Of a DNA stretch of 64,000 bases, positions 3,382-46,616 are shown piece by piece. Positions within the stretch are counted from its first letter, which is position 1. Every line of letters begins with the position of its first letter. The notes beneath the pieces are model-generated. The model had not been told where the DNA came from and searched no databases. It saw only the letters and a program-made list of their open reading frames with translations. Position numbers and translations under genes: made by a program. The stretch comes from Heteronotia binoei (taxonomy: Eukaryota), in the NCBI RefSeq assembly GCF_032191835.1, contig NC_083238.1, forward strand, positions 49,910,001 to 49,974,000, written 5' to 3'.

Positions 3382-4611
3382 CTGAAAGACAAGACGGGCC
3401 GGGGGGGGAGATCCAGTTATTTTATTTTCCACAAATATTGAGGAAGACGATAATGCTGATAGAATTCTTGCATATGATCTATGACTTAGAAAATATGGGC
3501 CTAAGCACATTTAAATGCACATTATTTCATTTGCCACTGATGGGATGTGTTTTCCATTTACGCTTTGATTATATCTCTGTCCGCAGGGCTTATATTTACA
3601 ACCAGTGTTCCCTCTAAGCTGAGTCAGTGTGAACTAGCTCACAGTAGTTTAGCTTCGAGCTCATACATTTTTGTCTTAGCTCAGGAAAAATGGTCCCAGA
3701 GCAAACTAATGTATGCAGGAGCTCACAATATTAATGCCCATAGCTCACAAAATAGAATCTTTGAGGCCCCTGAGCAACTGGATGTCAACTGCTTCCTTCT
3801 CCCTCTCTCTTGCTTCCTTCTGTATCTCAACTTGCTTTGCAAGGCTTGCTCAACTGCACAGGAGCTACAGAGCAAAACCTCTGTTTTCTCCATTGGCTGA
3901 GGCTCCTCTCTTGGGGAGGAAGGGGGGGGGAGGGATAGCTTCCTTTGCCAGGCTCTCTGAATCGCACAGCAGAACTACTGAGCCAAGCCTCTCTTCCTTC
4001 TATTGGCTGAGGCTCCTCCCCCTCCTTGTCCCTTGGGGAAGAGCCAGAGCTTCCTTTGCCCAGTTCCCTGGATCCCATGGGAGAGATACAAAGAAAACAA
4101 TTTAAGACCAATGAGCGCTAATGTTTTAAGCATGTTTTATTTTAAACTTTTAAAAAATCTTTGCATTTGTCTGTCTCCTTTATAAAGTTTATATTTCTGC
4201 TACCTGGCATTACATTTTATGTCATTTATGTCAGATTTGGCCCTCATAACAAATGAGCTTGATGCCCCTGGCTTAGAGGGAACACTGTTTACAACCTGTA
4301 CGATTTTAGGTGCTTTATAAATAACACCCAGCTGGAAGCCCAAAAGGGGCTGTGAGAAAGGGGAGGACAATTTGGAAATGCTACCAAACACTTCCGATCT
4401 GCAAGCTTCCAGCGGTTGAGCAGGCAGTCCCCCCCCCCCCCCCACATACACCAACAAACGACAGCTTGATACTCTCATCATTCCAATCCTTTTGGGAGAA
4501 TTTTCAGTTCTCACCAGACCCTTGTGATTAATTTGCATGCTCTCCTGCTTACTTGGGGAGTCCCGTGAGGATGTGAGAACCACTACTTCATCTGCAAGTA
4601 GACCACGGCTG

Positions 4612-5200
4612 CCAGTTTGGTGCAGTGGTTAAGTGGGCGGACTCTTATCTGGGAGAACCGGGTTTGATTCCCCACTCCTCCACTTGCAGCTGCTGGAATG
4701 GCCTTGGGTCAGCCATAGCTCTGGCACAGGTTGTCCTTGAAAGGGCAGCTGCTGTGAGAGCCCTCTCAGCCCCTCCCACCTCACAGGGTGTCTGTTGTGG
4801 GGGAGGAAGGGAAAGGAGATTGTGAGCCGCTCTGAGACTCTTGAGTGGAGGGCAGGATATAAATCCAATATCTTATCTACCTCACAGGATGTCTGTTGTG
4901 GGGGAGGAAGGTAAAGGAGATTGTGAGCCGCTCTGAGACTCTTCGGAGGGGAGGGCAGGATATAAATCCAATATCTTCATCTACCTCACTGGGGGTCTGT
5001 TGTGGGGGAGGAAGGGAAAGGAGATTGTGAGCCGCTCTGAGACTCTTCGGAGTGGAGGGCAGGATATAAATCCAATATCTTCATCTACCTCGCAGGGTGT
5101 CTTTTGTGGGGGGGGGGGAGGAGGGTAAAGGAGATTGTGAGCCGCTCTGAGACTCTTTGGAGTGGAGGGCGGGATATAAATCCAATATCTTCTTCTTCTT
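4612..5200 (+). mobile_element. Squam3-like tRNA-derived SINE with a 4-fold tandemly repeated ~103-bp 3' part
   Basis: tRNA-like head GCCAGTTTGGTGCAGTGGTTAAG..GGTTTGATTCCC. Repeat anchors at 4781, 4882, 4986 and 5090. Confidence 0.8.
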
Positions 5201-32164: not shown

Positions 32165-33217
32165 TACACTGTGACTAATAGCCACTAATGGACCTCTGCT
32201 CCATATTTTTATCTAACCTCTTGAAGCTGGCTATGCTTGTAGCTACCACCACCTCCTGTGGCAGTGAATTCCACATGTTAATCACCCTTTGGGTGAAGAA
32301 GTACCTCCTTTTATCCGCTCAGCAATTTCATTGAATGCCCATGAGTTCTTGTATTGTGAGAAAGGGAGAAAAGTACTTCTTTCTCTACCTTCTCCATCCC
32401 ATGCATAATCTTGTAAACCTCTATCATGTCACCCCGCAGTCGTTTCTCCAAGCTAAAGAACCCCAAGCGTTTTAACCTTTCTTCATAGGGAAAGTGTTCC
32501 AAACCTGTAATCATTCTAGTTGCCCTTTTCTGCACTTTTTCCAGTGCTATAATATCCTTTTTGAGGTGTGGTGACCAGAATTGCACACAGTATTCCAAAT
32601 GAGACCGCACCATCAATTTATACAGGGGCATTATGATACTGGCTGATTTGTTTTCAATTCCCTTCCTAATAATTCCCAGCATGGTGTTGGCCTTTTTTAT
32701 TGCAATCACACACTGTCTTGACATTTTCAGTGAGTTATCTACCACGACCCCAAGATCTCTCTCTTGGTCAGTCTCTGCCAGTTCACACCCCATCAACTTG
32801 TATTTGTAGCTGGAATTCTTGGCCCCAATGTGCATTACTTTGCACTTGGCCACATTGAGCCTCATCTGCCACGTTGACGCCCACTCACCCAGCCTCAACA
32901 GATCCCTTTGGAGTTCCTCACAATCCTCTCTGCTTCTTACCATCCTGAACAATTTAGTGTCATCTGCAAACTTGGCCACTTCATTGCTCTCAACTCCAAA
33001 TCATTTATGAACAAGTTAAAGAGCATGGGACCCAGTACTGAGCCCTGCGGCACTCCACTGCTTACCGTCCTCCACTGTGAAGACTGCCCATTTATACTCA
33101 CTCTCTGCTTCCTATTAATTAGCCAGTTTTTGATCCACAAGAGGACCTGTCCTTTTACTCCATGACTCTTGAGCTTACTAAGGAGCCTTTGATGAGGAAC
33201 TATCAAAAGCTTTCTGG
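32011..33217 (-). mobile_element. 5'-truncated CR1 LINE (RT C-terminus plus 3'UTR) nested in a hAT MITE
   Basis: ORFs with [22 protein letters not shown] and PYEERLKRLGFFSLEKR. CR1 (TTCTTATG)-type tail at the left end. The MITE sequence resumes on both sides. Confidence 0.9.
32097..32167. repeat. Compound (TG)n(TA)n(CA)n microsatellite within the CR1 3'UTR
   Basis: Read directly from the sequence. Confidence 0.95.
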
Positions 33218-36122
33218 CAAAGGAAGTTTTTGCAGAAGGAAGCAAGAGAGGGAGAAGGAAGCAGATGACAGCTAGTTGTTCAGAGGCCTGATTCAGCCCG
33301 TGGGCCACATGTCTGACACCCCTGCTCTAATGGACTTAAGATGGGACATCTTTCTACCAGTGTGCTTGCCCAGTGGGGTACCATTCTAGAACAGAACAGA
33401 TTTTTGTATGTTTTCCTTTGAATATTACAGGGATCTTTACCTTGTATTATGGAGATAAGAGGCACCCTCATTAGACCTCAAGCTTTGTGACAACATTGCA
33501 ATGTGGAGCCATAATGAATGCCTAAAATGAAGCCCCGAGTCCTCCCACAAAGGCCAAAATAGTCCTGAAAAGGGCCCTGCCTCCAGTTTTTTAGTAGGAA
33601 AAAACTTCAAGCTGGTTATTAAGATAAATTTATTTTTCAGATTTAACTATAACACTGAATTAAAAGATTATAAGCAAATATTTAGATAATTCTGAAATCT
33701 CAAAACATTACATTTGTGGACATTGGCAAAATATCAAAACAATTTATTAATATTTCATTCTTCTTACATTCATGGTATTTATATCCAAGGATCTCGACTT
33801 TTTGTATTTGCGTATTTCTCTCATACATCATAATAAGAAGCACAATCCAACCTTCCTCCATCTAGCTCAAGAAACTGAACTTCATAGCTAGCTGTACTCT
33901 GGAAAAAATTAACTTTAGAGCAACCATTTCAAAAAGGTCAATACCTACTGCTGGAGAAAAGTGCTTATGTACTTTAAAAAAAACCCCAGGGTCACAAAAC
34001 TTTCGAAGGCCAACAGTAGTTGCTGTATGCCATATGTCTTGGCAAAGAAAACAGCTTCATCTCTCTGAAACAATTTTCCTAATGAAAGGTACTCCCTTAT
34101 GCAATCACTGTTCTGTCCAGCTCTCAGTCTCCATATTCAAGCTGATACTAAAACTGTGATTGCTAAAAAGCTAAGGATTTTGGTCACAGGATGGATAATT
34201 AAGCTACCTCCAATCAAATTTGTATTTTTTTTTTAAAAAAACCTAGCTCCTCAAACTGAAGTGGAAAAACCTCTGCCTGTTATCTCTCATGTAATTCAAA
34301 GTGCAGCAGAAATGTGACTGGAATGTGTTATGACAAAGGTATAGTTCACGTCCAAGAATGCACACTAGTATAGTGACTTCAAACGCCCCGAGGCAGAGGT
34401 TCGCATGTACTTTGAGGAATACCCAGGGCTTTTTTTGCAGCAGGAACTCCTTTGCATATTAGGCCACACCCCCAATGTAGCCAATCCTGTAAGCTCTTAG
34501 AGGATTGGCTACGTCATGGGGGCATGGCCTAATATGCAAAAAAGTCCTGGGCGTACCTAAAGCACCTGCATGAGCTAGGTTCTCTTTTCCCTTCAACAAG
34601 TATGTCCCTTTGTGTGCAGGCCTGAACTTAAGTGAACGTGACTCTGGTCCAGCAAATAATTGCTAGATAAGGACCAAGTGTCTGCGTTGAACAGACAGGA
34701 ATTCAGTCTCACATTTTCATGAAAGCCCCTCTCGCTCCTCCCCAAAAAACAACCTGATTTCATCTCTTTCTGATGCATGATGCTGTTTTGTCCCTTCTAT
34801 GGCTTATGCTCTCTATATCGTATTTATATCGTTGGCTTATTAAAGATGAGAGGACTGCATAGCTTTTGTTCACAGTTCCAATTTGATTACCGTTTCCTGC
34901 CACCAATATCTTCCACAGTGCAAACTGCCTGCAGAGTTAGGGCCAAATTATATGTGACTGTTAAGTCCCTTAAAAGTTTAGACTGATTCTGTGTTCCAGC
35001 AATCCCGTTACAATATGAAGGGCTTTTCGGGGGCGGGGGGAGACTGAGAATAAGGCCATTTATGCGCTTCTGATAATCTCAGGTAAATTCTGGCATTGAA
35101 GGTTTATGCTATGGAACTTTTGCAGTCTTCTCCAAGGACATGTTTTATATAGAAAACTACATCTCTTTCTGTTTTGTTTATCAAACCTGTTTCAGTGTAT
35201 TTAACAGATGGCAATCACTCTGTTAGGAACTTTACCAAACACCTCTGCAAGTAAAGCTATTCTAAGATTTACTCTAATCTAAACTATATCAACCTCTTGT
35301 AGATGTCTGCTGTTCAATTTTTAAGAAAAGGTCAACACACAGTTGTTTCCAAAGGGTCCAACAGTCTCAAGATACAAAATTTTTAAAATGTGTTAGAGAG
35401 TTAATCAGCTTCAGTATTAATAGGGAATGTTGAACAGGGGTTAGATTACGCAATCTTGGTCACTTAAGAAATGTCTAATATTTGTTAAGTTTCCAACAAA
35501 AGCTAGTAACAGATGTTTAGTAATGGTTAGAAAATTGCACAACACCTTGCTGAATCTCAGCCCCTAAGGAAAGTTTTCACTGTACATACACTTAGATGGT
35601 GCCAATATAACCAACATTGCATTTCTTGTGCTATGCCAAAGTGCTAGAAACCAATCTTATTAATGCAGCCCAAATACCTGTGTTTCACAGGTCTTCACCT
35701 GAGGCTTCTCTGCATATGCTTTCCCCAGATCCTGAACACCTAGAACTTCTAGAAAGCTATTTCTAGAGACTGGCTGTAAAGGTTTGGCCACAAATTACAT
35801 CCGTAGTTAAAAGCAAGTATTAAGCCAGCATTTCCTCTGACGTCACAAAGAGTATTTTCAGAGAAACCCGTGTTGCTTTCCGTCAGCAGTCATACCAATC
35901 CCAACAAAAATCCTCATCTTTAAGCCATAGATACGAGGCTGTCAAGGTGCAAATGCAACACAGACTTTGATTAAAGCCCAGTCCTACTTTAAAAAAGTAA
36001 ACATTAGTACACGTTATAGTACTTTCCCTTTCCAGGGTTTAGAAGCCAGCGTCTCAGCCTGTCAAGTCGCAGCCCAAGGTGTGCTTTTGCAGTTGATATA
36101 ATACTGCAATACATTCACAGTG

Positions 36123-36956
36123 TCAGAATACTTCGTGGACTCTGAAGTGGTTCTCTAAGGAAGGGGGTTCGTCAGCAAAATGAAGCTGGCTGTGGACGTT
36201 CACGCCGAACTCCTCAAGAACTTGTACAAATCTCTTGTGCTCTTTTCCAATCCATGACCTCATCATATCGAATACTTGGTATGGTGTGACGTGAGTGTTA
36301 GCGGCAATGCCGGTCTGTGCAAATCCTTCCAGCACGTCAGGACAGGTCACCCAGGTATTGCTTCCTCCAGAATGACCACCATCCAGCCAGTAAATTGCTT
36401 GTATGTTTTTTACGAAGGCAGCAAGGTCCTTGTCCTGTTTTGCTTCCTCGAGTTCATAAAGCAACTGGTTCAAGACAACACAACCTTTGCTGAAACCTAT
36501 TAAAGTGAACGATGCTCCGCCGATGACAGAAGGTTCGATAAAGTTCATGGTTGAGTTGCTGAAAGGCTCACAGTCTGGCTCCTTTCCCACCGCTGGGCAT
36601 CCGTTGGTAGTAGGAGCATCAGGGGATTTGTACAGGGTGGCCTTTTCATCCTTGCTAAATCCATGGGTGGTCTTCTGAGATAGCAGAAAATTCTGTGCTG
36701 TTTTGAAGGCGTTGACCAATAGCGCGTGGAGGTGCCTGAAGGCTCCAAAGTCAGTGCTGTGTTCAGGCGCTCCAAACATATTGCTGGCCACAAAATTGTC
36801 ATAACAGCTGAACTTGTGCAAATGCATGCGAGAGCATTTTATAACCCAAATGTAACTGCCGGGGAAACGATGGCCGAGAATAGCAGCAATGTTTTCCAAG
36901 CACCAGCGCTCCCACTGGAAATTTTCTGGATGGCAAACCATAATTTCATGATAGCT
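36123..36956 (-). CDS. C2orf69: C2orf69 (mitochondrial protein) exon 2
   Basis: SYHEIMVCHPENFQWERW...GFSKGCVVLNQLL...LDGGHSGGSNTW...ENHFRVHEVF*; acceptor TTTCAG at 36958-36957. Confidence 0.96.
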   Translation of the reverse strand, partial: SYHEIMVCHPENFQWERWCLENIAAILGHRFPGSYIWVIKCSRMHLHKFSCYDNFVASNMFGAPEHSTDFGAFRHLHALLVNAFKTAQNFLLSQKTTHGFSKDEKATLYKSPDAPTTNGCPAVGKEPDCEPFSNSTMNFIEPSVIGGASFTLIGFSKGCVVLNQLLYELEEAKQDKDLAAFVKNIQAIYWLDGGHSGGSNTWVTCPDVLEGFAQTGIAANTHVTPYQVFDMMRSWIGKEHKRFVQVLEEFGVNVHSQLHFADEPPSLENHFRVHEVF

Positions 36957-41419: not shown

Positions 41420-43250
41420 GTTTGACAGCTGCTCCTAGGTACCTCTCCCATGCAATTTAAATCATGGGGGAGAGCTGGCAACCCCCAGCTCCTCAGATTG
41501 AAGGAAAGGTTAAGAACATAATAGAAGCCATGTTGGATCAGGCCAATGGCCCATCCAGTCCAACACTCTGTGTCACAGTGGCCAAAAAACACAGGTGCCA
41601 TCAGAAGGGCCAGGTAGTCAGAGAACAGGGTACCCAACAGGAAGTCAGAGGGCAGGGCCCCCACAGGCCCCCCTGTAGCTATAGCTCTAAAGTTCCCATC
41701 ATCACCACTTGAGGGCCCTTCAAACAGCACCAGGGGCGGGGGGAGGAAGCAGCTGCTCCTGGGTACCCCCTCCCATACCATTTAAATCACGGGGGCGGGA
41801 AAGGGCAGGGAAGGTTGGGGGTATCAGACGGGAAGTCAGGAGGCAGGGCCCCCACAGGTCCCCTGTAGCTATAGGCCTGAAGTTCCTTCATCACCTTAGG
41901 ACCCTTTAAATGGCACGGGGGGGGGGGGCAGCAGCTGCTCCTGGGTACCCTCTCCCATGCCATTTAAATCATGGGAGAGGGATGGGGCAAGGGGATGGGA
42001 GGGAGAGAAGCTACCAGACAGGAAGTTCCCCCATCACCTTAGAATCCTTTAAATGGCACGGGGGGGGGGTGGCAGTTGCTCCTGGGTACCCCCTCCCATG
42101 CCATTTAAATCATGCGGGAGGGCAAGGGGATGGGGGGAATGGAAGCTACCAGACAGGAAGTCAGGGGACAGGGTGGGGGGGAGAGCAGCTGCTCCTGGGT
42201 ACCCCTCCAATGCAATCTAAATCATGGGGGCGGGAGGAGGCAGGTTGGGGTACCAGACAAGAAGTCAGGGGGCAGGGCCCCCACAGCCCCCCTGTAGCTA
42301 CAGGCCTGAAGTTCCCCCATCACCTTAGGATCTTTTAAATGGCAGGGGGGGGAGCAGCTGCTACTGGGTACCCCCTCCCATGCCATTTTAAATCATGGGG
42401 GAGGGCAAGGAGATGGGGGGGAGGGAAGCTATCAGACAGCAAGTCACTGTAGCTATAGGCCTGAAGTCCCCCCCCCCCCATCACCACAACTCAAGGACCC
42501 TTTAAATGGTGGGTGGGTGGGGGAGAGCAGCTGCTCCTGGGTACCCCTCCAATGCAATCTAAATCATGGGGGCGGGAGGAGGCAGGTTGGGGGTACCAGA
42601 CAAGAAGTTAGGGTGCAGGGCCCCCACAGCCCCCCTGTAGCTACAGGCCTGAAGTTCCCCCATCACCTTAGGATCTTTTAAATGGCAGGGGGGGGAGCAG
42701 CTGCTACTGGGTACCCCCTCCCATGCCATTTTAAATCATGGGGGAGGGCAATGAGATGGGGGAGAGGGAAGCTATCAGACAGGAAGTCAGGGGGCAGGGC
42801 CCCCACAGCCCCACTGCAGCTATAGGCCTGAAGTCCCCCCCCCCAATCACAACTCAAGGACCCTTTAAATGGTGGGTGGGGGAGAGCAGCTGCTCCTGGG
42901 TACCCCTCCAATGCAATCTAAATCATGGGGGCGGGAGGAGGCAGGTTGGGGGTACCAGACAAGAAGTCAGGGTGCAGGGCCCCCACAGCCCCCCTGTAGC
43001 TACAGGCCTGAAGTTCCCCCATCACCTTAGGACCTTTTAAATGGCATGGGGGGGGGGGGAGCAGCTGCTACTGGGTACCCCCTCCCATGCCATTTTAAAT
43101 CATGGGGGAGGGCAATGAGACGGGGGAGAGGGAAGCTATCAGACAGGAAGTCAGGGGGCAGGGCCCCCACAGCAGCTATAGACCTGAAGTCCCCCCCCAT
43201 CACCACAACTCAAGGACCCTTTAAAGGAGAGCAGCTGCTCCTGGGTACCT
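41420..43250. repeat. G-rich ~175-bp minisatellite (11 units, dimeric ~350-bp higher-order period) in C2orf69 intron 1
   Basis: GCAG(C/T)TGCT(C/A)CTGGGTACC anchors at 41426, 41749, 41931, 42072, 42185, 42354, 42527, 42697, 42886, 43061 and 43231. Confidence 0.85.
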
Positions 43251-43315
43251 AAACCTTGGGGCGGGAGGGGGCAGGGAAGGCTTGCAGCGTGGCGCAGCGC
43301 CCCTCCGGGCCTCAC

Positions 43316-43672
43316 CTGGACGTCGCCGGGGAAATAGATCACGTGATGCTGCGGCGGCGGCGGGGGCTCCGGGCGCGGGGGCAGGAAGAGCAGCACGTCG
43401 TTGCCGCGGGAGGGCTCGGCGCCCGGGACAGCGGGCAGGCGCAGCCAGGGCAGGTCCAGGCGGGGGGCCGACGCGGACGAGAGGCGGGCGGGGGAGGAGG
43501 TGGCGTCGGCGAAGTGGTTGCGGTTGCCGCCCCCTCCGCCGCTCGAGGGCCCCGCCAGGCAGGCAGCCGGCCCCCCGCGCAGGCTCATGTTCCGCGCCAG
43601 GCAGAGGAAAGCGGAGCCGAGGAGCCCCCTCAGGACGGAGGCGACGGGCGGGCAGCGCCGGCCGCCGCTCAT
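43316..43672 (-). CDS. C2orf69: C2orf69 exon 1
   Basis: MSGGRRC...VPGAEPSRGNDVLL...PPPQHHVIYFPGDVQ resembles human TVPGADPQRSNELLL...PPPQHHVLYFPGDVQ. Donor CAG|GTGAGG; 357 nt, phase 0. Confidence 0.92.
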
Positions 43673-43679
43673 GGAGGCT

Positions 43680-44010
43680 CTCGCACACCTTCCCTCAGGC
43701 GCCTCACGCACCACCGCGCAGCCGCGGAAAGGCAGGGGCGGGGCTGGACGGAGGAGCGAGAGGGCGCGCGGACGCCGCCTCCTCTCTCGTGATTGGCTGG
43801 CGTGCTCGGCGCTCTTTCTGTAGCCTTTGAGAGAGAGAGAGAGAGAGAGAACGAGAGCGGGAAGCTTAGAGGCTCGGGGTTGGCTGAGGGGGGAGACGAG
43901 GCTGGCGCGCGGAGTGGCGCATGCGCGTTGCTGGGCGCGCGTAACGGATTTTTAACGGCTCGCGCTGTCGGAGCGTTCTGTCGCTTCGTGAGAAGTAGCT
44001 TTGACCAGCC
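43680..44010. promoter_or_regulatory. CpG-island bidirectional promoter between C2orf69 and the septin retrogene
   Basis: CpG-dense segment between divergent ATGs (43672 and 44011). Contains ATTGG (CCAAT box) at 43792-43796, (GA)n at about 43828-43849 and a perfect NRF1 palindrome GCGCATGCGC at 43917-43926. Confidence 0.75.
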
Positions 44011-45303
44011 ATGACCGACTCCACCCCCGCCGCGGGTGTCATGACTCTGCCAAAGACTCCTGAAAGATATGTGGGGTTTGCCAATCTCCCCAATCAAATT
44101 TACAGGAAGGCTGTGAAGAGAGGGTTTGAATTTACCCTCATGGTCGTCGGGGAATCTGGACTGGGGAAATCGACGCTCGTCAATTCCTTGTTTCTGGCAG
44201 ACTTCTATTCTCCAGAGTATCCGGGACCTTCCCAGAGAATTAAAAAGACGGTGCAGGTTGAACAGTCGAGGGTTCTCCTGAAAGAAGGGGGTGTCCAGCT
44301 GTTGCTAACCATTGTTGACACCCCAGGATTTGGAGATGCCCTGGATAATAGCAATTGCTGGCAGCCTGTAGTGGACTGCATTGACAGTCGTTTTGAAGAC
44401 TACCTCAGGGCCGAGTCACGGGTGGACAGACGGCAGGTGGTGGACAACAGAGTGCACTGTTGCTTATATTTCATTTCTCCTTCAGGACGTGGGCTGAAAC
44501 TGCTGGATGTTGAGGTTATGAAGCGCCTACATGAAAAAGTGAATATCGTTCCGCTTATTGCCAAAGCAGACACGCTGACTCCTGAAGAGTGCCAGTGGTT
44601 TAAGAAACAGATCATGAAAGAAATTCTAGAGCACAAGATTAAAATATATGAATTCCCCGAAACGGGTGATGAAGACGAAAACAAGCTGGTTAAAAAGATA
44701 AAGGACCGTTTACCTCTTGCTGTAGTAGGTAGCAATACCATAGTTGAAGTCGGAGGCAGGAGAGTTAGGGGAAGGCGGTATCCTTGGGGAGTTGCAGAAG
44801 TTGAAAATGATGAGTACAGTGACTTCACAGTTCTCAGGAACATGTTGATAAGAACCCACATGCAAGACTTGAAGGATTTCACTAATCATATCCACTATGA
44901 GAACTACAGAAGCAGGAAATTGGCAGCGGTTGCATACAGTGGAGCAGACAACAGCAGAAACAAAGGACAGGTAACAAAATTTGACAGAGTAGAAGGCATG
45001 AGCCCTCAAGCACAAATAGAAGAACGGAGAGAGTACCTGCCAAAGATGAAGAAAATGGAAATGGAAAAGGAGCAGGACTTTGAAATGAAGTACAATGAAA
45101 AATGGCAGAAACTGAGGGACACTGAAGCAGAGCTCCAGCGGCGTCATGAGCAAATGAAAAAGAACTGGGAGGCCCATGACAAAGAACTGGATGAAAAACG
45201 CCTCCAGTTTGAGGAGGAGAAAGCAAACTGGGAAACCCTACAACGTATTTTGGAAAAACAGAATTCTCCAAGAACTTTGGAACAGAACAGGAAGCTGTTT
45301 TAA
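44011..45303 (+). CDS. SEPTIN7-like: Intronless septin-7-like retrogene, intact 430-aa ORF
   Basis: Single uninterrupted ORF with G1 GESGLGKST, switch-I Thr80, G3 DTPG, G4 AKAD, YPWG and a C-terminal coiled coil. About 87% identical to human SEPT7 over the G domain (hand alignment from memory). The downstream sequence resembles the SEPT7 3'UTR, followed by ATTAAA/AATAAA. Confidence 0.93.
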
Positions 45304-45530
45304 ATCCACCAGTTAATGTTTGTTGCCAGTATTCTAGCCTGGACATCGGTGTGTGTTGGATCTGTTTGACCAGTCTTGCAGCAGTCTATGTTAAATTATT
45401 AATATTAAATTGTTTATGTTAAATATATGAATTTAATACCATGACAAAAATGTTTTAAATTTTGATGACAATTGTGTTGCCTTGAATTGTTTAGGTTGTA
45501 TGCTTGGAACAGAACAGTTCTAAGTACCGT

Positions 45531-45542
45531 ATTAAAAATAAA
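45531..45542 (+). terminator. Overlapping poly(A) signals ATTAAA/AATAAA of the septin retrogene
   Basis: ATTAAAAATAAA about 230 nt after the stop, followed by a degenerate A-rich tract (45560-45590). Confidence 0.6.
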
Positions 45543-46616
45543 AGTTATCTTAATTTTTAAAAAAGATTGGGGGCACTTAAAAAACAAAAACAATTTTAAG
45601 TTAAATGGAACAATACGTTGACTTTTATTCTTGACAAGAAGACGACATTGGATTTATATTCCACCCTCCACAGAGTCTCAAAGCGGCTCACAATCTCCTT
45701 TATCTTCCTTCCCTACAACAAACACCCTGTGAGGTAGGTGGGGCTGAGAGATCTCTTTCAGAAGCCTCCGGGTGGGACCTGAGGATCTCCTGTAATTGCA
45801 GTTTACCTCCAGACTACTGAGATCAATTCCCCTGGAGAAAATGTATGCTTTGGAGGGTGGACTCTGGCATTGTACCTCACTGAGGTCCCTGTCCTCCCCA
45901 GGCTGTATCGCCAGATCTCCAGGAGTTTCCCAACTTGAATCTGGCAACTCTACCCCATCATCCTCTATCAGTGACCAAGGGGGACCTAGCAACCCTACTT
46001 ATGTTCTTATGAGGGGTTGAGAGGGAAAAGCATATGGGAATCCAATTATTTTAGTAATCTTGACCTCAGACCTGAATGATTATTTTATTTATGATAACTG
46101 GGTTACAGACAAAGGAACACCCATTTTGTCGGTTATCATTTAGAGCTGCCAATCTCAAAGTAGGACGTGGAGCTCTCCTAGAATTACAACTGATGTCTGG
46201 ACTACTCTGATCAGTTCCCCTGGAGATATGGCAGCTTTGGAAGGTAGGCAGTGTGGCACTACTCATCTGAGGGCCCTCCCCAGGCTCTATACCCAATTCT
46301 CCAGGGATTGTTCAAACCCAGAACTGACAACACTAGATACCACAATCTACTTGGGATTGTGCTGTCAGAGGCCATTAGGTGTGGGATTGTGCTGTCAGGG
46401 GCCATTAGGTGCATTTGTATGTTGGCTGCAACCAAGAAAGTGAATCTGTAAAGCTTAATACATGTTTTCATTCAGTAGCTAACTTTATTGCCTCTCCTCC
46501 TGCTGAGGGTTGATGGTCACATGATAGGATTCCACTGCCAGCTATTACAACTGATTTCCAGGTGACAGACAATTCATTTGGAGAAAAATGGTCACTTTGG
46601 ACGGTAGACTCTATAG

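Follow-up and report, generated by a model that had tools for sequence, protein, structure and literature searches.

Two described situations come closest to the locus reported here. In mammals, some expressed retrocopies lie head to head with a gene less than 2 kb away, recruit its bidirectional promoter and are co-expressed with it (Carelli et al. 2016, PMC4772013). Among septins, Drosophila Sep5 is a retrogene of Sep2 (SEPT6 subgroup) and has been retained as a functional gene (O'Neill and Clark 2013 as cited in PMC4938648; PMC3690201). The gecko retrogene considered below also lies less than 2 kb from a protein-coding neighbour, head to head with it and at its CpG-island promoter; however, co-expression was measured in the mammalian retrocopies, whereas the squamate case is known from sequence. 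Like Sep5, the gecko retrogene arose by retroposition from a septin gene and was retained; it belongs, however, to another subgroup and another phylum, and function was demonstrated genetically in Drosophila, whereas in the gecko it is selection that points to it.

The remaining comparison is with vertebrate SEPT7, which is, to our knowledge, the sole member of its septin subgroup in amniotes. The retrogene resembles it in the septin G domain with the G1, G3 and G4 motifs, in the polybasic N-terminal region and in the C-terminal coiled coil. It differs in that it is intron-less, lies on another chromosome, has a different promoter and begins at a new N-terminal start; omega, which is about 0 in SEPT7, has climbed to about 0.25 in the retrogene, and the copies show G-interface histidine losses (Heteronotia) or a P-loop S>A replacement and a C-terminal truncation (Gekko). 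We hold with good confidence that a SEPT7 retrogene was inserted at the C2orf69 promoter, is likely transcribed divergently from it and has been selected as a protein-coding gene in both genera. The retrogene is real, selected, clade-specific and of SEPT7 type; the mechanism of its origin is textbook.

The window is the whole 64-kb stretch of Heteronotia binoei DNA that was analysed, and positions are counted from its first letter. The features used below are as follows.

36126..36941, minus strand: open frame with C2orf69 exon 2, the last exon (Pfam C2orf69, 2.9e-98).
43316..43672, minus strand: C2orf69 exon 1, 119 codons, donor CAG/GTGAGG, matching the annotated 396-aa protein.
43673..43978, no strand: putative shared CpG-island promoter region, CpG observed/expected 0.9-1.3.
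43792-43796: CCAAT box (ATTGG) in the intergenic CpG island, conserved in Paroedura.
About 43829-43851: (GA)n run in the intergenic CpG island.
43917-43926: palindrome GCGCATGCGC, conserved in Paroedura.
43979..44010, plus strand: approximate 5' end of the insert, a plausible remnant of parental exon 1 (5'UTR); flank homology with Paroedura ends near 43978.
44011..45303, plus strand: SEPT7-derived retrogene CDS, 430 aa, stop included (intact ORF, Pfam, structure match, exon alignment).
45304..45554, plus strand: retrogene 3'UTR, homologous to the last exon of parental SEPT7.
45555..45564, plus strand: what is left of the poly(A) tail, decayed to TTTTAAAAAA; A15 stands here in the Gekko ortholog.
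45565..45638, no strand: pre-insertion flank, colinear with the empty site of Paroedura from 45569 on.

The initial annotation had described an intact single-exon ORF for a septin of 430 aa, and this description is accurate: there are 0 stops and 0 frameshifts across the 430 codons of 44011..45303 on the plus strand. Residues 37-307 of the protein match Pfam Septin (PF00735) with E = 7.4e-119 and 396.6 bits (cut-off 26.2); the best match among solved structures is human SEPT7 (743 bits, with SEPT2 at 382 bits), and the top matches of a database search are all SEPT7. The GTPase motifs G1 (GESGLGKS), G3 (DTPG) and G4 (AKAD) are intact and can be read directly in the alignment, and every indel relative to the parent is in frame, which agrees with the earlier reading on both points. 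The GTPase motifs of the Gekko ortholog are intact as well, its P-loop reading GEAGLGKST (S>A). Identity to the parental SEPT7 protein is 82.6%, with replacements at 75 of 418 aligned codons; 36 of them fall in the 260-aa G domain, the earlier count being approximately 38 substitutions for a domain of ~287 aa. The start ATG at 44011, common to the Heteronotia and Gekko copies, is new and arose within the former 5'UTR; the parental start codon is kept as Met11 in the Heteronotia copy and is lost in the Gekko copy.

The septin ORF derives from a SEPT7 mRNA by retroposition. A six-frame search of the gecko's own genome places the parental gene, which is multi-exon, on another chromosome (G000:C10:79.85-79.91 Mb). 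The retrogene aligns end to end with 13 separate parental exons, the borders of which are GT/AG with one GC donor, and all 12 coding-exon junctions are collapsed and abutting. The copy includes a 21-nt parental microexon, which encodes FDTVEGM in the parent; the FDRVEGM segment was therefore inherited from a parental isoform, and the earlier suggestion that FDRVEGMSP is a unique segment has to be withdrawn, its source being this alternative microexon. Over 415 aa the parental gecko protein does not differ from sheep SEPT7 (100% identity), and therefore all 75 replacements occurred on the retro lineage.

At the 3' end, the homology with the parental last exon extends over 252 nt (87% identity over aligned bases, 11 indel events), and the poly(A) signal AATAAA occupies 45537-45542, 12 nt before this homology ends. 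A SEPT7-like 3'UTR, a poly(A) signal and an A-rich tail had all been proposed; the 3'UTR and the AATAAA stand, as does a tail at 45555-45564, but the rest of the A-rich stretch, up to 45590, is pre-existing flank, since it is also present at the empty site of Paroedura. The left boundary of the insert is uncertain by ~20 nt. In an alignment anchored on the exon 1/2 junction, the 30-40 nt that precede the junction ATG show some similarity to parental exon 1, although not significantly (106/1000 shuffles), and neither genome search nor blastn detected homology between 43880-44052 and that exon; an exon-1 origin of the first ~40 nt of the insert is thus plausible only. No target-site duplication was found at the insert, the one 8-mer match being at the wrong position and at chance level; erosion of such a duplication is expected at the insert's age. 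The SEPT7 mRNA that was reverse-transcribed contained the 21-nt microexon and stopped at a proximal poly(A) site.

The C2orf69 neighbourhoods of Gekko japonicus, Paroedura picta, Sphaerodactylus and Eublepharis were compared with that of Heteronotia. In Gekko japonicus the sequence upstream of C2orf69 contains an intron-less septin, encoded on the other strand; it aligns to 43876-45640 of the window at 80% identity, its frame is open over 407 codons from the homologous ATG, and RefSeq annotates it as 'septin-7-like'. The Heteronotia and Gekko copies are orthologs: they have in common 18 derived residues, a 3-nt deletion and the start ATG, and the tail positions correspond, A15 in Gekko standing where Heteronotia has TTTTAAAAAA. 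The Gekko copy lacks the last ~22 residues, a 12-nt deletion having created a TAG. In Paroedura picta the orthologous site is empty, with about 30 nt separating its two colinear flanks (up to window position 43978 and from 45569); this bears out the suggestion that the septin is lineage-specific. In Sphaerodactylus and Eublepharis, the 10 kb upstream of C2orf69 contain neither a septin nor any assembly gap.

An occupied site in Heteronotia and Gekko and an empty one in Paroedura imply a single insertion in the Heteronotia/Gekko ancestor; this event followed the separation of the Paroedura lineage. Gekkonid phylogeny groups Heteronotia with Gekko to the exclusion of Paroedura; within this analysis, the sole evidence for that grouping is the presence/absence pattern.

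Placement within SEPT7 used the CDS from Gekko, Phrynosoma, Crotalus and one bird mRNA. Of 29 gekkotan synapomorphies the window copy shares 23, and at 1 it agrees with the outgroups; it is mostly ancestral at the sites that differ between the two gecko SEPT7 genes. Maximum-likelihood nucleotide trees make the two retrocopies sisters (100% support) and nest them within gekkonid SEPT7, with support of 100% when all sites are used and 99% for third positions, so that derivation from SEPT7 and not from another paralogue, as initially claimed, is confirmed. Database searches with the whole protein and with its C-terminal half had given no closer relative than ordinary SEPT7; this result was misleading, the Gekko ortholog being placed in a large SEPT7 cluster represented by a falcon sequence, and the ortholog was found only through the C2orf69 neighbourhood.

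RefSeq gene models exist for both gecko retrocopies. Exact look-ups found neither the window protein nor the 407-aa Gekko frame in the records; the 369-aa Gekko model is confined to the genome record, and no RNA-derived contig with the exact Gekko protein was retrieved. A full-text literature search returned no paper that combines septin, gecko and retrocopy. As a separate observation, sequencing runs X6 and X7 (47 and 64 Mb) contain 76% of the words of the stretch; they are enriched libraries, of either capture or cDNA type, because this proportion far exceeds random shotgun coverage at 0.02x. RNA runs from the species (X1-X3) are also on record.

The neighbour is C2orf69, the frame at 36126..36941 (minus strand) being 100% identical to the annotated C2orf69 protein. 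The C2orf69 start codon is at 43672-43670 on the minus strand, and the two ATGs are head to head with 338 bp between them, exactly as first noted. CpG observed/expected is 0.9-1.3 over 43251-44000. The palindrome at 43917-43926, which we take to be an NRF1-type site, occurs once in the 64-kb window (0 expected by chance), and the insert begins about 50 nt beyond it. The CpG island and the NRF1 and CCAAT motifs were already part of C2orf69 when the copy was inserted, because they are conserved at Paroedura's empty site; this gives indirect support to the earlier proposal of a borrowed housekeeping promoter. Rfam gave no match in 43000-46500.

The copy was inserted ~300 bp upstream of the C2orf69 start codon, antisense to this gene and at the edge of its CpG-island promoter. 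The retrogene may well share the promoter with C2orf69 and is presumably expressed; most likely the NRF1/CCAAT promoter that was already there drives its divergent transcription, and its own AATAAA ends the transcript. The copy has gained a new upstream ATG.

The pairwise omega between the retrogene and its parent is 0.24, and 0.5 is the expectation for a neutral copy set against a frozen parent; the latter value was rejected (2dlnL 16.4), and this test was superseded by outgroup polarisation and a control for the W>S spectrum, because the synonymous rate is very unequal between branches. From the inferred ancestor to the window copy, omega is 0.27 (bootstrap 0.18-0.40; 2dlnL 46 vs omega = 1). 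Since the spectrum is strongly W>S biased (97 W>S vs 35 S>W substitutions in the window copy) and third-position divergence declines along the copy (0.30 at its 5' end, 0.07-0.15 at its 3' end), synonymous and non-synonymous changes were recounted against the opportunities within each mutation class. For all codons of the window copy, 82 non-synonymous changes are observed and 123 expected relative to the inferred ancestor (z = -7.9); in the same comparison omega is about 0.2 in the first 240 codons (z = -8.3) and about 0.5-0.7 in the last 182 (z = -1.7). After W>S control the non-synonymous deficit holds on each branch: the stem (omega 0.31, z = -3.8), Heteronotia (0.31, z = -5.7) and Gekko (0.24, z = -6.0).

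The two orthologs compared with each other give omega 0.24 over all codons (dN 0.10, dS 0.415; 2dlnL 61.9, p = 4e-15 vs omega = 1); raw dS overstates the age of the retrogene, because the GC-biased process discussed at the end inflates the synonymous rate near the CpG island, and plain omega needs the spectrum control. By region, the same comparison yields 0.18 for the N-terminus plus G domain (p = 4e-16 vs omega = 1) and 0.49 for the C-terminal part of 137 codons, which is not significantly below 1 (p = 0.07). Other counts are consistent with these values. After 158 random substitutions the frame would still be free of stops with a probability of 0.0014; some 28 CDS indels are expected at half the 3'UTR rate, and 3 are seen, all in frame; and replacements affect 9.9% of the sites invariant among 118 SEPT7 proteins vs 31% of the variable ones.

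Purifying selection therefore acts on the retrogene at the codon level, and the C-terminal coiled-coil region is weakly constrained. The initial annotation spoke of an old, selected retrogene; an ortholog dN/dS of 0.24, far from 1, supports it, and its selection claim holds well for the G domain (0.18) but only weakly for the C-terminal part (0.49). Two findings had been named in advance as speaking against that reading, namely orthologs with stops and a dN/dS near 1, and placement outside SEPT7; both comparisons were made, and the synteny check at C2orf69 gave a Gekko ortholog open over its 407 codons and not full of stops, at the dN/dS just quoted, while the trees gave SEPT7. The retrogene has most likely been kept as a protein-coding gene in both genera under strong purifying selection on the GTPase domain and weak selection on the C-terminal coiled coil.

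An internal neutral control was available in the same genome, again from the six-frame search.

G000:C7:99771419-99771998, minus strand: dead SEPT7 retrocopy.

This copy is 87% identical to the parent and 77% to the window copy, and was therefore processed from the parent and not from the window copy. It has 653 nt remaining, with three frameshifting deletions and stops, and shows 10 gekkotan states and 1 outgroup state. Its changes by codon position number 27/24/18, vs 19/13/58 in the same region of the window copy, and its spectrum is AT-biased (W>S 0.060, S>W 0.110 per site). Thus the two copies are alike in their SEPT7 parent, similar divergence and gekkotan synapomorphies; the dead one, unlike the retrogene, is shortened, frameshifted, evenly changed over codon positions and AT-biased.

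Some replacements in the retrogene may bear on septin function. Heteronotia alone has H63Q, H148R and H257Y; Gekko keeps all three histidines. H257 aligns with SEPT2 His270. H148 is the trans-loop-1 histidine, equivalent to SEPT2 His158 and highly conserved, and the trans-loop-1 histidine contacts the partner across the G interface (PMC7056273). Its loss in Heteronotia could mean that the protein no longer forms the usual interface with its partner. At coiled-coil sites invariant in SEPT7, Heteronotia also has the radical changes V345D, V350Y and M342K, and the branches carry 39 (Heteronotia) and 23 (Gekko) replacements.

These replacements are what would be cited in favour of the view that the gene, after being functional over most of its existence, recently lost its function in Heteronotia, where it would be intact by inertia: the Heteronotia branch has more replacements than the Gekko branch, H148R and H257Y affect histidines that Gekko keeps, and the three coiled-coil changes are radical. 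We consider such a loss unlikely, since the Heteronotia branch taken alone still has omega of about 0.31 (z = -5.7), with 0.24 in the G domain, and its frame is fully open with the GTPase motifs intact. A neutral processed pseudogene, its frame surviving by chance, might be suggested on general grounds, most retrocopies being dead and a dead SEPT7 retrocopy of similar divergence being present in this very genome. The observations already contradict it: a frame free of stops has a chance of about 0.001 in one lineage and is seen in two, omega between the orthologs is 0.24 at p = 4e-15, the third-position excess differs from the uniform pattern of the dead copy, and the CDS has in-frame indels only vs 11 events in the 252-nt 3'UTR; the probability that we leave to it is close to nil.

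It is very improbable, too, that the locus is selected not for a protein but for a non-coding transcript running divergently from the C2orf69 promoter, or for a decoy of SEPT7 mRNA. Divergent CpG-island promoters commonly yield non-coding upstream transcripts, and the 3'UTR is fairly well conserved with the parent (the 87% over aligned bases given above); the constraint, however, tracks codon position and amino-acid change, both genera keep the reading frame and start ATG, and the replacements avoid SEPT7-invariant residues.

The protein-coding reading, which we prefer, gives Heteronotia and Gekko geckos a rare second SEPT7-type septin. The retrogene probably encodes an extra SEPT7-group subunit of septin complexes, and its product may be incorporated into them. 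The role in testis or sperm annulus that the initial annotation mentioned is speculative. A further step, which we propose only tentatively and with somewhat less than even confidence, is that this gekkonid clade has had a second, independently evolving subunit at the SEPT7 position for tens of millions of years, with altered assembly rules. If this were true, the G interface would be re-tuned in Heteronotia (the trans-loop-1 His changed to Arg, the SEPT2 His270 equivalent to Tyr), the C-terminal end of the septin would be shortened in Gekko, and hexamer or octamer types found in no other amniote would exist in these lineages.

SEPT7 being almost invariant, a selected copy with 18% of its residues changed is a natural mutational scan of the positions that tolerate change, and the diverged copy permits testing whether a non-canonical subunit can fill the central position of septin oligomers. 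The locus is also a clean, datable non-mammalian case of a retrocopy that probably owes its viability to insertion at a bidirectional CpG-island promoter, a view supported because the site is occupied in two genera and empty in a third.

The substitution spectrum of the insert is of interest in its own right. In both gecko lineages the W>S rate of the retrogene falls from 0.17-0.20 near the CpG island to 0.07 at the 3' end, and S>W is depressed; beside the island W>S is about three times the neutral rate, which it reaches by about 1 kb, again in both lineages. A gradient of this kind is what GC-biased gene conversion, or some similar process centred on the promoter, would be expected to leave. 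The insert would thus record a promoter-centred GC-biased process, which may be useful in studies of biased gene conversion and hotspot location in squamates.

The substitutions in the retrogene are strongly biased toward GC in both gecko lineages (window 44011-45303; Gekko japonicus ortholog, L042:1851-3071), and the bias weakens the farther a site lies from the CpG island of C2orf69. GC-ward (W>S) substitutions number 0.17-0.20 per site at first and only 0.07 some 1.2 kb further on, and GC3 of the first 200 codons has risen from 0.36 to 0.53-0.56. Such a gradient resembles what biased gene conversion centred on the promoter would leave. A second SEPT7 retrocopy on contig C7 of Heteronotia (genome G000) was used as the neutral control; its coordinates are listed here together with those of the parental exons on contig C10.

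G000:C7:99771419-99771998 (locus L027, about 4368-5004), minus strand: second, truncated SEPT7 processed pseudogene
G000:C10:79822677: end of Heteronotia SEPT7 exon 1
G000:C10:79847816: start of Heteronotia SEPT7 exon 2 (Gekko counterpart at about 2900 of L040)

The C7 retrocopy (653 nt, 87% identity with the parental CDS) contains stops, and deletions of 4, 10 and 2 nt shift its frame at three places; its substitutions are AT-biased and uniform across codon positions.

Concerning the parental gene, the sequence at the start of exon 2 is ...TCTTAG|CAACAG in both geckos, compared with ATGG|TAGCTCAACAG in a bird mRNA; as a result, when the exons are spliced by hand, the canonical exon-1 ATG (ACCATGG|gtgagt) of gecko SEPT7 does not share the reading frame of exon 2. 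Translation of gecko SEPT7 may instead begin by way of a different first exon or acceptor.

In Gekko japonicus, an assembly gap (L042:3471-3533) separates the retrogene from C2orf69, and the C2orf69 gene model (272 aa) lacks exon 1; together these mask the distance between the two genes.

A repeat (window 45636-45700) starts just 3' of the retrogene insert. It is probably an interspersed element, since the introns of SEPT7 on C10 contain several copies of it (73-78%); further matches were found in L042 and L044. Downstream of the C2orf69 coding sequence, the ORFs at window 32311-33308 (minus strand) have RVT_1 (reverse-transcriptase) matches; this is a retroelement fragment.
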